64,000 nucleotides of DNA from Hyphochytrium catenoides (taxonomy: Eukaryota; Protista; Hyphochytriomycota). Shown in pieces: positions 3,081 to 58,200 of the stretch. The translations under genes and the position numbers were made by a program. Position 1 is the stretch's first letter, and each line of letters opens with the position of its first letter. The stretch spans positions 1 through 64,000 of the forward strand of contig FLMG01001674.1 in the NCBI GenBank assembly GCA_900088475.1, written 5' to 3'. The notes below the pieces were generated by a model that worked only from the letters and a program-made list of their open reading frames with translations, was not told the origin of the DNA and searched no databases.

Positions 3081-3420
3081 CTAGGTAGACTGTGCGATGC
3101 CGATCACTCCGCCCGCAATCCGAGCGCCAGAGTTTCCATTTTGAAGAGAGAGCTCGTGGCCACCCTAGAGAGAGAGAGAAAGGGTGTGAACATAAAGAAA
3201 AAGAGACAGAGAGAGTGAGAGAGAGACATAGAGCAAGGCATCGAGAGTGACAGAGAGAGAGAGAGAGAAAGAGGCAATGAGCGAAAAAGAGAGAGGGGAA
3301 TCGGAGACAGAGAGAACAAGAGAGAGAGAAATTGAAGACCCAGGGTTAGCAGAAGAGAGAGCAAGAAGAATAGAGACATAGAGAGCACCAAAGGCTATAG
3401 CAAACAGTCTCCCAAACACA

Positions 3421-3464
<44 letters not shown>

Positions 3465-3614
3465 AAGACCGCATTACCTTGCCAAGATCATCCTCTCTCT
3501 CCTTAACTACGAGGGATCTTCCAATGACGGAGTGTGGGCCAATGAGCTTGACGCCCCTGTCCTCAATCTTCACCACCGCAGTACCATCAGTGTCAGCCTC
3601 AATGTTCCCTGGGG

Positions 3615-3655
<41 letters not shown>

Positions 3656-3677
3656 GAAGAAAGAGAGAGAGAGAGAG

Positions 3678-3721
<44 letters not shown>

Positions 3722-3851
3722 TAAAACAAAGAAGAAAGAGAAGCAGGTCAGGACAATAGAGTAAAGACATGTTGGACAGAAAGAAGTCAGAAAGATAAGA
3801 GGAAGATCGGGGAACATAGAAAGTAGCAAGAAAGACATAAAAAAGGCAGAG

Positions 3852-3900
<49 letters not shown>

Positions 3901-5099
3901 AAAGAGAGTCCAACATCCTTTAGGCATCTCGTTTTCAAGCAGAAATGCTTGAATGGAGAGACTTCAAAACCAAACCAGTGCAAAAAGAGAGAAAGAGACT
4001 CATAAGAGAAAGGAAGGAACCTTGGGAGCACAGCCTCTCCAGAGAGAGAGAGAGAGAGAAAGACGGAGAGGGAGAGAGAGAGCAAGAGAGAGCACGGACA
4101 GACCTAGGTCTCCGGCTCTGCGCTCCTTGTCATCGGGGCCTCCATGGTTCTTTAGGTGTGGGTTGAAAATATTGCCTAGGAAAGGAGAGAGAGAGAAAGA
4201 GAGTGAGCCCGAGAGAGAGAAGAGAGAAAAAAACAAGAGAGACACGAGAGTAAAGGCACGGTATATAGATAAAGACAAAAGAGAGACAGGGAGAGACTGC
4301 AAGGGAGAAGTAGTGTAGATCATAAAGTAAGAGCCACCCTACTTTCAGGATCTACGTGAAAGAACCAGAAGAGAGAGAGAGAAAGAGAAAGAGAAAGAAA
4401 AGGAAAAAGAGCGCGCGGACAGAATGGGGGAGAGAGAGAGAGAGAGAGAGAAGGAGACAGACGGAGAGAGAGAGAAAAGAGGACATATAACAGAATACGA
4501 GAGAGAGACCTTGACGGCAGAGAGCGAGAAAGCAGGAAGGGCATTAAGAAGTACATAGAAAAGAGAGAGAGGGAGAGAAAGAGAGAGAGAGAAAGTGCAA
4601 GATAGGTAAAGAAGAAAGAAAGGGAAACAAAGGACTCACCACAGCTGACAAAGTTCTGGGAGAGATCTCCGAATGTGTGGATGTGGAAGCCGTGCTTGCC
4701 CTGGAGAAGAGAGAACAGCCATAAGTGGCCTTGGAGAGAGAGCCTTTATATTTTCTCTCTCTTTCTCTCTCTTTCCTTCCTGCATTTCCCTCTCTTTCCT
4801 GGGAGTAGTCAGCACTTTTTTGTCTCTCTCTCTTTGTTCACAACTATTTTCTCTCTCTCTCTGCTGAATCTCCCCTATCTTGCTTGCCGTCTTTCACTTT
4901 TGAACGCACAGCTCTCTTTCGCACTTCTCTCTCTCTCTCTCTCTGTGTCTCTCTTCTTTTCTCTCTCTTGAAAATGACATACCGCGGTGAGGCCCTTAAT
5001 GGTCCCAGAGATGATGGTAGGAGCATCTTCCTGTGACTGAGTCAGCAGAATCTCTCCGCTGATGCCGTCGCCAGTGAGAACACAGATAGCGCGAGCCAT
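3081..5099 (-). CDS. Cu/Zn superoxide dismutase-like protein, 154 aa, 5 exons, with degenerate metal sites
   Basis: Exons 5099-4983, 4700-4640, 4175-4104, 3608-3478 and 3164-3081 (all GT-AG) splice in frame to [10 protein letters not shown]...[12 protein letters not shown]...[25 protein letters not shown]...[50 protein letters not shown], collinear with SOD1. Confidence 0.93.
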
Positions 5100-53680: not shown

Positions 53681-54640
53681 ATGGACGCCTGGGTGACAAA
53701 GGCTGGAGAGCACTCGCTCCAGCGGCAGCCCATTCCCACGTTGAGTGAACGCGATGTTCTTGTCCGCCTCAAGACCGCGGCGATGAACCCTGTCGACCAT
53801 AAGGTAACCGCAGGCGGAGCTGACAATGCCATCCTGGGCTTTGACGGCGTTGGAACGATAGAGAAGCTTGGCCCCAAGGCCGTGCTGGGCTTTAAAGAGG
53901 GCGATGAAGTCTGGTTTGCTGGCAACCTCAAGCGGAATGGCTGCTATGCCCAATATGTTGCCATAGATGAGCGCATTATCTCTAAGAAACCCAAGAAGTT
54001 TGATGCTAAGCAATCCGCTGGCTTTCCATTGGTAACGCTTACAGCCTGGGAAGCCTTCGAGGAGGGAATGGGCATCACAACGCTGGACTCAGGGAAGACC
54101 ATGCTCGTTATCGGTGGAGCGGGAGGCCTTGGAAGTGTTGCCATCCAAGTCGCTAAGCAGCAATTTAACCTCTTCGTCATCGCCACCGCTTCCAGGCCAG
54201 AAAGTAGCGCTTGGTGCACCAAGATGGGTGCAGACCTTGTCATTGACCATACAAAGGACCTTCTTCCACAGTTGGGGGACCACCGAGTGGACTATCTCTT
54301 CTGCACGGAGGACAAGTCTAGGACATGGGACCAGTGGGGCGATATCATGAATGTCAACGGGAAGATTCAGCTGATCACGGCTCCAGACAGGCCAGTCTCG
54401 CTCGAGCCCTTCTTCTACAAGCGTATTAGCGTGGGCTTAGAGCTGATGTTCACAAGGCCTATGTTTGACGTGGAGCAGGAGAAGCAGGGTCACATTCTTA
54501 AGAGGATGGCCCACTTGGTGGATGCAGGACGCATCGTCCCCGTTGATAACTATCATTTTGACTTCAAAGAGCTGAAGAAAGGGTATGAGCAGATCAAGAC
54601 TGGAAAAAGCATTGGAAAGATCATCTTCACTGGATTTTAG
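53681..54640 (+). CDS. MDR-family NADPH:quinone oxidoreductase / zinc-type alcohol dehydrogenase-like protein, intronless, bacterial-type
   Basis: MNPVDHKV, ILGFDGVG, FKEGDEVWFAG, PLVTLTAWEA, VIGGAGGLGS, IATASRPES, MGADLVIDH, ELMFTRPMF and GKSIGKII. No zinc-ligand Cys cluster. Confidence 0.93.
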   Translation: MDAWVTKAGEHSLQRQPIPTLSERDVLVRLKTAAMNPVDHKVTAGGADNAILGFDGVGTIEKLGPKAVLGFKEGDEVWFAGNLKRNGCYAQYVAIDERIISKKPKKFDAKQSAGFPLVTLTAWEAFEEGMGITTLDSGKTMLVIGGAGGLGSVAIQVAKQQFNLFVIATASRPESSAWCTKMGADLVIDHTKDLLPQLGDHRVDYLFCTEDKSRTWDQWGDIMNVNGKIQLITAPDRPVSLEPFFYKRISVGLELMFTRPMFDVEQEKQGHILKRMAHLVDAGRIVPVDNYHFDFKELKKGYEQIKTGKSIGKIIFTGF

Positions 54641-55238: not shown

Positions 55239-58200
55239 TTACTCGCTCCAGCGCGAGTTGGAAGCAACTTTCTCCTCCTCAGCTGACAAAGCCGGAGAAG
55301 CTGAGTTTATTCTCTGGACACATCGCTGATGGTGAGCTCCCTGCTCTCTGTGCCGCTGCTTAGGAGGGAACTTGTTAATCGTTGCGATCAGCTCATTCAC
55401 ACGAAGCGGCTTGGTCACATATTCGTCCTATGATGAGAGAGGAAGAGAGAAAAGATTGGTATTAGAAGGTCAGGGGTCATGATGATAGAAGGAAAGTATG
55501 GAGGTCACTAGGTTGACAAAAGGTAAAAATCTATGGGGTAGTACAGAAGCAGTCACGATAAGTGAAGAAGACATCCAGGGCTAAACAGCGGTAGACACTT
55601 CAATCTTCTTACCATGCCCGCAGCGACGCATTTCTCCCTGTCACCAATCATGGCATGCGCTGTGAGCGCAATGATAGGCACTCTCTCCCAGACTTCCTGC
55701 CCTCTCCTAGTGGCATTCTCCTGCTCCCACTTCCTGATTCTCTGGGTGGCCTCAAAGCCGCCCATGATAGGCATCTGCACGTCCATCAGCACCAGGTCGT
55801 AATCGCCCATCTGGAACATTTCAACCGCGATTTGTCCGTTTGAGGCAATCTGAACCTTGTGACCGAACTTCTCGAGCACTCTAACCGCAAGCTTCTGGTT
55901 GACTACATTATCCTCGGCCAGCAGGATGTGCAGCGGAGTAGGAGGCGTAGAAGCGTTTGCAGGCAGCGAGAGTTGCAGCTCGAGGGCCGGCAGAAGAGCA
56001 TTGAGTACGTCTGGCAGGGTTGGAGTCACAGTCAGCGACTGGATGCCCAGCTCAAAGCACTTCTTCATGAGCAGAGGCGGATGCACCGGTGAGAAGAGAA
56101 CCATTGGGATGTAGCGCAGATATGGGGACTGGCGCAGAGGAGGGATGGACGAGAGCTTGGACACTGTTGGCAGCGCAGCAGGAAAGAGGAAACTTAGAAC
56201 TGCAGGATACCATCATAGAAGAGACTCTTGAACTAACTGCAGGCCCTGGGACTCTCTACCCGTCATTTCTCTCTCTATCTCTCCAGCCATTCTGAATTTT
56301 CAAGGCTATCAAGGCTATTTCCCTGCTGGTGCTTACCTATGGCCACGTCGAACTTGACACCCTTGAACTTCCCTTCTTCTTCCCACTGAATAGCCTCCCT
56401 TGCCGTGCGGACCCTGATCGGCCGCAACTTGAGCGCTTCAAGATGCTGGAGCATGAGAGAAGCCATGGTCTCTCGGTCTCTGTGAACCCATTCGTTCTTG
56501 GTAATAACCTCTCTATGGGGAGGTTTCTTTGCATCAGCTCTGTCCCTCTTTCTTCTCTTCCTCTTTCTCTTTTCCTTGTCAGTTCCATATGGCTCCTCGC
56601 CAGCTTCTCCTCCTGGTTGAGCGCCTTCTTCTGCCTCATCAACCTTCTCATCCTCGCTTCTCTCTTGCTCAGAAGCCATGTCCTCGTCATCATCACCTGG
56701 TTGCTCCTCCTCCTGCGTTACCGTTCCAATCTCCATCTCGTCCTCCGGTATGTCACAATGGCCAGAGAGAGACAGGAAGGGAGAAACAGGCTCATCCTCT
56801 TCTTCATCCTCTCCATCCACAAGTAGGATCCATCTTCCAGTGTAAGGGATCATCTTCTGCTCCATGAGGAGATTGATGTCAGCGTTGATGTTGACATTGT
56901 TGCCCACGTAGATGGCAGAGAGCTCCTTTCCTTTCTCGCCTACCCTCTTTCGCCCATCTGCTCCCCCTATCACTGCACAGCCGCCACTAGTCTTAGCTAG
57001 CGCGGACGAGACACAAGGTGGCTCGAACGGAACGGATGAAGGTAGCGCGAGCGCCGTGGAGGCGGGTGATGCGCAGCTCTTATTCTCCGTAACTTTGACT
57101 GTGAAGTAGAAGCGTGATCCCTCTCCATACTTAGATCTGACCCACAGCCGGCCGCCCATCAGAGCAACAAGCCGCTTTGAGATGCTTAGACCAAGCCCCG
57201 TACCGCCATACTTGCGCGTGGTAGAGCCTGTGCCACGGATGTAAAGGTTAAGAAGGTGTTTGGCCAGTATAGTCGCTAGGTGTCTTACCGTCTGCCTGAC
57301 AGAAAGTGTCGAAGATGACGTGCGCCTTGTCTTCAGGAATGCCAATGCCGGTATCACTGACGCAGAGAGTGAGCTCCAGAGAGCTTTCCTCTTCCGTACC
57401 GTTTTCATCAATCAGCCTCACGCACTTGGCGCTGACCACAATCTCGCCTTCAGATGTGAATTTGACGGCATTGCCCACCAAGTTCGTGATGACCTAGAGA
57501 GTAAACTTGTTAGAGAAAAGCTTCCCTCGCCAGCTCATTTATCAATCCACGCACCTGTCTCAGTCGAAGAGGGTCGCCGATCAGTTGGTCAGGAATGGCA
57601 GGATTGATGTTATAGATCAAGTTCAGGTTCTTCTGATGAGCCTTAGGAGCCATCGTCTTCAGCATTGAGAAGACAGAAGAGCGAAGAGAGAACGGGATGC
57701 GCTCGATATTCAGCTTGCCAGCCTCGACTGCAGGATTAAGAGGAAAACAATGGAGAAAGGAAGCAGACATCGGTCAGAACTGCCCAGGTAACGATTCAAC
57801 ATGGGGAGACAAGGACTTACTCTTGGAGATATCGAGAATGTCATCGATGATTGTCAGTAGAGAGTTGGCAAGAGAACTGACTGTCATGAGATTCTCCCTC
57901 TGCTGACGGGTGAGCTCTGTTTCCAGAGTCAAGTTCGTCATACCGATAATGCCATTCATCGGGGTTCGGATCTAAGTGATAATGATGGTCATGCAGAGAG
58001 CACGGCCTTAGCAAACCAATTAAGAAGCCCCAGGCGAGATCATTTTGCTTCTTACCTCGTGAGACATGTTAGCCAAGAACTCTGACTTGCTTCTGTTCGC
58101 AGTCTCTGCCGCCTCCCTTGCCAGCCTATTCTTATGAATACTCTCACGCAGATTGTAGACCATTTGGTTGATCTTCGTCTTTAGCGAGTCCATTTCACCC

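Follow-up and report, generated by a model that had tools for sequence, protein, structure and literature searches.

Introduction

In canonical SOD1, the copper/zinc superoxide dismutase (Cu/Zn SOD), copper is bound by H46, H48, H63, and H120 and zinc by H63, H71, H80, and D83, with H63 bridging the two metals (PMC4460010; residues follow human SOD1 numbering throughout). A 2026 review by Peterson and Culotta covers CCS, the Cu-only SODs, and CSRP as derivatives of SOD1, without mention of an algal or stramenopile class (PMC13017621). In 2015, Groussman et al. reported that most diatom 'Cu-ZnSOD' sequences fully conserve only His71 and Asp83; their study dealt with diatoms only, assigned no function, and still regarded these proteins as putative Cu-ZnSODs (PMC4460010). 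Here, we analyze a SOD1-like gene from Hyphochytrium catenoides, situated at positions 5099 to 3081 on the minus strand of a 64,000-nucleotide stretch (contig FLMG01001674.1 of assembly GCA_900088475.1, positions 1 to 64,000; referred to as the window). We show that this gene is real, intact, and under strong purifying selection, and that its product (the window protein) has lost half of the ligands of each metal site together with the intrasubunit disulfide. It belongs to a ligand-poor stramenopile clade, whose members probably do not perform canonical dismutation.

YojM of Bacillus subtilis is a SOD-like protein with the Cu/Zn-SOD fold, which lacks two copper ligands and is not known to show significant activity. 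Unlike the window protein, it is a lipoprotein from bacteria that belongs to the prokaryotic SodC lineage, and the residues lost in it are different ones. Domain II of CCS is derived from SOD1 and has lost the copper site while keeping the SOD1 dimer interface (PMC13017621). However, CCS contains Atx1-like and C-terminal CXC domains, whereas the window protein is a bare barrel of 154 amino acids. Its assignment as a CCS copper chaperone was ruled out because neither the N-terminal Atx1-like MxCxxC domain nor the C-terminal CxC domain III is present, and a CCS-like chaperone role is thus unsupported. The Cu-only SODs (SOD5/CSRP) are active Cu/Zn SOD derivatives with a degenerate metal site, defined by four copper histidines, loss of the zinc site, deletion of loop VII, and an extracellular location, either secreted or glycosylphosphatidylinositol anchored (PMC13017621). 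In contrast, the window protein keeps loop VII at full length, bears no signal peptide, and is left with just two copper histidines, and this class was ruled out as well. Poxvirus pseudo-SODs are catalytically dead SOD1 homologs with a nonenzymatic role (PMC7605207), a likeness that holds insofar as the window protein is presumed to be inactive; unlike it, they are viral and compete for the chaperoned copper of the host. The diatom 'Cu-ZnSOD' homologs (PMC4460010) fall into the same clade as the window protein in our trees, but the latter keeps H46 and H48 and belongs to the oomycete-side lineage.

An intact SOD1-like gene with an incomplete metal site

The gene comprises five exons separated by four introns, all bounded by GT...AG, and the joined coding sequence of 465 nt, stop included, translates into 154 amino acids. 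Exon 1 (4983..5099; minus strand, as for all parts of the gene and all codons below) starts with the ATG at 5099-5097 and encodes residues 1-39. After intron 1 (4701..4982; 282 nt, mainly CT repeats on the coding strand), exon 2 (4640..4700) contributes H43, H46, H48, Phe at the position of Cys57, and Cys60. Intron 2 (4176..4639; 464 nt) is followed by exon 3 (4104..4175), specifying Ile at His63, His67, H71, Arg at His80, and D83, and intron 3 (3609..4103; 495 nt) by exon 4 (3478..3608), which encodes the Greek-key loop and β-strand 7 with Lys at His120, D124, and D125. Behind intron 4 (3165..3477; 313 nt), exon 5 (3081..3164; stop at 3081-3083) holds the remnant of the electrostatic loop (E132, L133, Q136, and N137), R143, and Gly at Cys146. 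Separate matches to Pfam Sod_Cu (PF00080) were obtained for exon 2 (E = 1.9e-4), exon 3, and exon 4 (E = 8.7e-9, above the Pfam cut-off). Upstream of the ATG, there are only seven open codons, with no ATG among them; the protein opens directly at β-strand 1, lacking a targeting or signal peptide, and ends with ...GIAQST-stop, the usual SOD1 end.

An original prediction, made from the DNA sequence, had listed H46, H48, H71, D83, and R143 as retained. Codon by codon, this was borne out (H46, 4683-4685; H48, 4677-4679; H71, 4144-4146; D83, 4108-4110; R143, 3120-3122), and D124 (3490-3492), H43, and D125 are kept as well. The five replacements that it named were all recovered: C57F (4650-4652), H63I (4168-4170), H80R (4117-4119), H120K (3502-3504), and C146G (3111-3113). 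A gap-free alignment of exon 4 with residues 86-128 of human SOD1 structures places Lys opposite His120, and the cysteine expected near position 60 is Cys60 (4641-4643). Missing from its list were a new His at position 67 and three electrostatic-loop changes (E133L, K136Q, and T137N), with E132 and the loop length being kept. In sum, two of the four copper ligands are left (Ile and Lys having replaced H63 and H120), as are two of the four zinc ligands (Ile and Arg stand in place of H63 and H80), and the C57-C146 disulfide is lost (Phe57, Gly146). H80R corresponds to a zinc-site variant of human SOD1 in amyotrophic lateral sclerosis (ALS). The window protein resembles canonical SOD1 in length, in the eight-stranded Greek-key barrel with normal loops IV and VII, in H43, H46, H48, H71, D83, D124, and R143, and in the interface motifs; it differs by the loss of H63, H80, H120, and the C57-C146 pair and by the alteration of E133, K136, and T137.

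The fold was modeled on a proxy, P0053, which shares 68% identity with the window protein and, including R80, has the same ligand pattern (HHFIHRDKRG). With an alignment of 150 rows, AlphaFold produced a model with a predicted local distance difference test (pLDDT) score of 97, which superimposed on human SOD1 with a template modeling (TM) score of 0.97 and a root mean square deviation of 0.9 Å over 153 residues. The backbone fold is thus predicted to be unchanged, and loops IV and VII keep their normal length. A poor first model of P0053 (19 rows, pLDDT 54) was dismissed as an artifact of the shallow alignment, given the score obtained with 150 rows.

Purifying selection and the splicing model

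A metagenome scaffold of 581 bp in ENA (L001, positions 1-581) carries a genomic piece of the orthologous gene from a close relative. Of 122 aligned amino acids, 108 are identical to the window protein (88.5%), and at 0.089 per site the nonsynonymous differences (pN) stand against fully saturated synonymous sites, so the ratio of nonsynonymous to synonymous rates (dN/dS) on the window gene's own lineage is far below 1. The GC content at third codon positions is 0.61 in the window gene versus 0.10 in the scaffold, which derives from a very AT-rich genome. I63, R80, and K120 are kept in the scaffold, and the lineage-specific residues H67, L68, K77, R80, Q136, N137, and C60 are all shared with it. 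When the window protein is set against the consensus of the family described below, the two disagree at 3 of 55 conserved columns (those with 90% conservation or more) versus 40 of 99 variable ones (Fisher P = 1.4e-6). It is typical in this respect, since 16 of 89 family members depart at conserved columns as often or more. The gene is therefore real, intact, and under strong purifying selection, in keeping with the earlier view that it is not a decayed pseudogene, and the relaxed dN/dS that would have spoken for decay was not observed.

Different splicing might in principle restore the histidines. When canonical and variant SOD1s were compared with the whole 64-kb window by tblastn, these five exons were the only ones detected, and no alternative exon was found in the window. 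The window protein aligns over its full length and without indels to cDNA-derived relatives of 153-155 residues, and every changed codon falls within an exon. Introns 1, 2, and 4 have counterparts at equivalent positions in the metagenome scaffold; intron 3 is absent from it, and its DNA reads straight through the exon 3/4 junction (GDLGNIE). Since there are no other exons in the window, the relatives are collinear, and the scaffold reads through this junction, a spliced form with the histidines restored can effectively be dismissed, and frame, length, and splice sites are intact, as had been claimed. The Phytophthora ramorum orthologue has a single intron at a different position and is uninformative on intron conservation.

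Tracts of (CT)n on the coding strand, which read as GA on the plus strand, make up most of each of the four introns, and the flanks are filled likewise. Among public RNA sequencing runs, the best shared 5-7% of words, and none from the organism was found. In four such runs, the only matches were GA-repeat 31-mers and a conserved 32-nt piece of exon 2 from SODs of other organisms, the spurious repeat matches being due to the GA/CT tracts in introns and flanks.

A ligand-poor family in stramenopiles

Homologs were sought with the stop-free open reading frame (ORF) at 3349-3729 (minus strand) as the query, limited to the exon 4 region, and then with a profile built from the full-length matches, for which the ligand columns were tabulated. 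These searches uncovered a family with the pattern H46 H48 x57 I63 H71 M/R80 D83 K/T/F120 R143 G/A146. It was found in Phaeophyceae, Xanthophyceae, Chrysoparadoxa, Raphidophyceae, Chrysophyceae, Pelagophyceae, Pinguiophyceae, Bolidophyceae, and Eustigmatophyceae, and the clade as a whole was encountered in every sampled ochrophyte class and in oomycetes. Members stem from Ectocarpus, Choristocarpus, Tribonema, Chrysoparadoxa, Heterosigma, Chattonella, Fibrocapsa, Hydrurales, Chlorochromonas, Epipyxis, Aureococcus, Aureoumbra, Chrysophaeum, Phaeomonas, Triparma, and Nannochloropsis, and many of them are MMETSP transcripts and thus expressed. The suggestion of similar variants in other stramenopiles, voiced in the original prediction, was correct and extends to a whole ancient clade.

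In the main group, position 80 is usually Met and rarely Arg or Lys, and position 120 is Lys, but Phe in pelagophytes and Thr in raphidophytes. Two further forms have changed more extensively, that of diatoms (S/T46 N48 I63 M80 Y120) and that of oomycetes (N48 V63 R80 S83 H120 I143 F/Y146). Relative to the nearest canonical SOD1s, the differences of the family are essentially confined to positions 57, 63, 80, 120, and 146, and the window protein shares 67% identity with its canonical counterpart from Platysulcus tardus. In the non-diatom ochrophytes, H43, H71, D124, D125, R143, the Gly motifs, and the interface motifs (GD 51-52, IGR 113-115, and GI 150-151) are 95-100% kept. Most of these columns are also preserved in diatoms and oomycetes, with R143 replaced by Ile in the latter. 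H46 and H48 reach the same 95-100% in non-diatom ochrophytes and are kept in the window gene, but are replaced in diatoms. K120 occurs in 76% of the non-diatom ochrophyte group, as well as in the window protein and the metagenome scaffold. H71 and D124 are invariant across all variant groups, position 63 is Ile or Val and position 80 is Met, Arg, or Lys, all with long side chains, throughout the main, diatom, and oomycete forms, and position 120 is constant within each class while varying between classes. With F57, I63, H71, R80, D124, and G146, the window protein carries the combination that characterizes the clade (I/V63, M/R/K80, no Cys at 57 or 146, H71, and D124).

The oomycete proteins P0081 (Saprolegnia), P0202 (Plasmopara), and P0083 (Phytophthora) are annotated as copper/zinc superoxide dismutase yet show N48, V63, R80, S83, I143, and F/Y146, except that P0202 has Cys at position 80; their public names are probably misleading. 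A third variant group, environmental in origin (AHW; P0025, P0031, P0062, P0071, P0074, and P0082), displays the pattern A46 H48 H63 H71 H80 G/S83 A120 P143 W146, in which the three zinc-site histidines are kept and copper ligands, R143, and the disulfide are lost. It falls inside the variant clade and, if this placement is right, His63 and His80 were retained or regained there. P0190 from Cantina marsupialis (EukProt) has all ligands but H120 (Asn) and no cysteines at the disulfide positions (A57, A146); it groups with canonical SOD1s and could be an intermediate or a case of parallel loss. P0207, deposited as 'sod1, partial [Symbiodinium microadriaticum]', shares 86% identity with the chrysophyte-type P0053, reflecting either contamination of that assembly or transfer.

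Phylogeny of the variants

In a tree that included the ligand columns, all variants lay on one side of a branch separating them from canonical SOD1s (99/89). This branch persisted after removal of the eleven ligand and cysteine columns (84/77) and in an enlarged set without the ligand columns (78/69), the canonical SOD1 of Platysulcus being the nearest outgroup of the variants. A ligand-poor clade, defined by its replacement pattern, was thus recovered from both phylogeny and ligand columns across orthologues, the check that had been suggested for this gene.

The exact sister group of the window protein depends on the ligand columns. With these columns kept, it was placed weakly inside the ochrophyte group; with them removed and the metagenome scaffold added, the window protein and the scaffold sequence were sister to oomycetes (97/82). 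In an approximately unbiased (AU) test on a 60-row alignment without ligand columns, assembled before the scaffold was included, neither placement was rejected (P = 0.45 and 0.40). In the tree without ligand columns, the ochrophytes formed a starred set, with the AHW group nested within it (96/87), and their order is largely the accepted one, diatoms grouping with Triparma and brown algae with Tribonema and Chrysoparadoxa. The gene tree largely tracks the species tree. The simplest reading is a single orthologue that was already present in the common ancestor of ochrophytes and the oomycete lineage and has been passed on vertically ever since. In that case, I63/K120/G146 would be an old combination and the oomycete state a further departure from it.

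Putative function and alternative explanations

We consider it likely, although by no means assured, that the window protein represents an ancient, vertically inherited stramenopile clade of SOD1-fold proteins which do not carry out canonical dismutation, in which packing interactions replace the metals, and which are kept for a role depending on fold and surface. There is no imidazolate bridge, each site is left with two of four ligands, and the bridge residue has become aliphatic, so the Cu/Zn pair should be unable to assemble. As the binuclear Cu-imidazolate-Zn centre would not form, canonical dismutation appears very unlikely. Of the original proposal of a probable pseudoenzyme, the part concerning the canonical Cu-His63-Zn site and the disulfide, neither of which can form, was thereby strengthened, whereas inactivity itself and the structural, chaperone-like, or regulatory role proposed alongside remain putative.

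The window protein is probably cytosolic and a homodimer. Its copper redox dismutation cycle would be absent, and the loops normally fixed by metal and disulfide would instead be held by packing of Ile63 with Met or Arg80, supplemented by Lys, Tyr, or Phe120 and the retained H71-D124(-H46) network. The behavior of columns 63, 71, 80, 120, and 124 suggests such a replacement of the metal cluster by packing rather than a new conserved catalytic site. Maturation might proceed without copper, zinc, or the CCS chaperone, the CCS-requiring step presumably having gone with the loss of both cysteines. The gene would then be kept for a function of the fold and its conserved surfaces, namely the dimer-interface motifs, loop VII, and R143. 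Taken together, the sequence features point to a metal-independent SOD1 barrel in a noncatalytic role, with binding, scaffolding, or loose metal buffering more likely than catalysis.

Several points weigh against this interpretation. The loss of activity is inferred from the sequence, and no transcript of the window gene was found in the public runs. A purely structural role does not account for the conservation of H46 and H48 outside diatoms; this conservation could reflect a residual metal site, while the retained R143, D124, and full-length loop VII would fit the handling of a small anion. Moreover, AlphaFold ignores metals, and a good model, as predicted here, is no proof of metal-free stability.

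One alternative is that the protein is still a redox enzyme, SOD or other, with a remodeled mononuclear copper site made of H46, H48, and Lys120 or a new ligand, toward which R143 would steer the anion. The near-invariance of both histidines in non-diatom ochrophytes and their presence in the window protein, the prevalence of K120, and the retention of R143, D124, and the length of loop VII are all compatible with this idea. Nevertheless, pelagophytes have Phe at position 120, raphidophytes Thr, and diatoms Tyr, and H46 and H48 are both replaced in diatoms, so the family as a whole shares no conserved copper site. We know of no SOD site formed by two histidines and a lysine, and the characterized Cu-only SODs all hold four histidine copper ligands (PMC13017621). 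We therefore regard a remodeled copper enzyme as unlikely. Slightly less probable still is an involvement in the canonical copper pathway, with the protein serving SOD1 or CCS as a partner or decoy, comparable to CCS domain II or to the poxvirus pseudo-SODs, which vie for chaperoned copper (PMC7605207). The motifs forming the SOD1-SOD1/CCS interface are indeed invariant in non-diatom ochrophytes and the window protein. Yet the window protein has neither an Atx1-like domain nor a CXC tail, and in most diatoms the ligand-poor form is expressed whereas a canonical Cu/Zn SOD is not (PMC4460010). With a canonical diatom SOD1 as the query, very few canonical stramenopile matches were obtained, followed by animals and fungi, which is suggestive but no proof of absence. 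With the canonical form this scarce, such a partner protein would lack its partner in many species.

That the gene is a recently disabled copy or an artifact of the splicing model, the true product being canonical or absent, is highly improbable. It would accommodate the failure to find RNA reads of the organism in public runs, but it conflicts with the intact frame, the GT-AG introns, the lack of alternative exons in the window, and the indel-free match to cDNA-derived relatives. It also conflicts with the metagenome scaffold, which shares three introns, contains the fourth junction as uninterrupted DNA, and still encodes I63, R80, and K120 despite synonymous saturation. A decayed pseudogene was ruled out by the intact frame and purifying selection, and a splice artifact by the exons detected with tblastn, the cDNA-derived relatives, and the junction in the scaffold.

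Implications for 'CuZnSOD' annotations

Ligand loss in diatoms was known before. The breadth and age of the clade, the loss of the disulfide, and the constraint on these proteins are new in that they were not found in the accessible literature. In openly accessible publications, which leave out most subscription journals, we found no usable biochemical characterization of members, studies of oomycete SOD1, or reports on CCS in these algae. The known SOD1 derivatives, CCS, Cu-only SODs, and CSRP, each opened new metal biology. The clade described here is old, constrained, and detected at the protein level in ecologically dominant diatoms, yet its members are annotated and modeled as normal Cu/Zn enzymes. 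A 2026 study in Science Advances quantified the Fragilariopsis kerguelensis 'CuZnSOD' by the peptide DGSSSCGPIFNPFGK, which has Ile at position 63, and assigned one Cu and one Zn per monomer toward oceanic Cu:C and Zn:C ratios (PMC13754022). The estimated metal contribution of this 'CuZnSOD', about 0.3 of that of MnSOD (PMC13754022), implies that the protein is abundant. In the sequence set assembled here, the ten C-terminal residues of DGSSSCGPIFNPFGK occur in diatom-type members only.

It is tempting to speculate, although we put the chances slightly below even, that the main 'Cu/Zn SOD' of ochrophytes such as diatoms, brown algae, pelagophytes, raphidophytes, and chrysophytes, and of water moulds and their kin, is an abundant SOD1-fold protein without stoichiometric Cu/Zn that has not been a dismutase since their common ancestor, and thus a fourth class of SOD1 derivatives. 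If these proteins hold no metal, 'CuZnSOD' annotations and the Cu and Zn quotas of marine proteomics would be wrong for these organisms, and many algal and oomycete 'CuZnSOD' expression studies would have to be reread. The role of such a protein in cells relying on Mn, Fe, and Ni SODs would become a directly testable question. It would also provide a natural case of an SOD1 barrel whose folding needs neither metal nor disulfide nor chaperone, with relevance to SOD1 folding and ALS.

Surroundings of the gene in the window

At about 2200-2230, the window contains a short run of N (X in ORF translations), presumably an assembly gap in a GA/CT repeat. Among the long stop-free ORFs, that at 53681-54640 (plus strand) matched in Pfam a zinc-type alcohol dehydrogenase/quinone oxidoreductase-like protein, and that at 56275-57411 (minus strand) a histidine-kinase-type HATPase_c domain.

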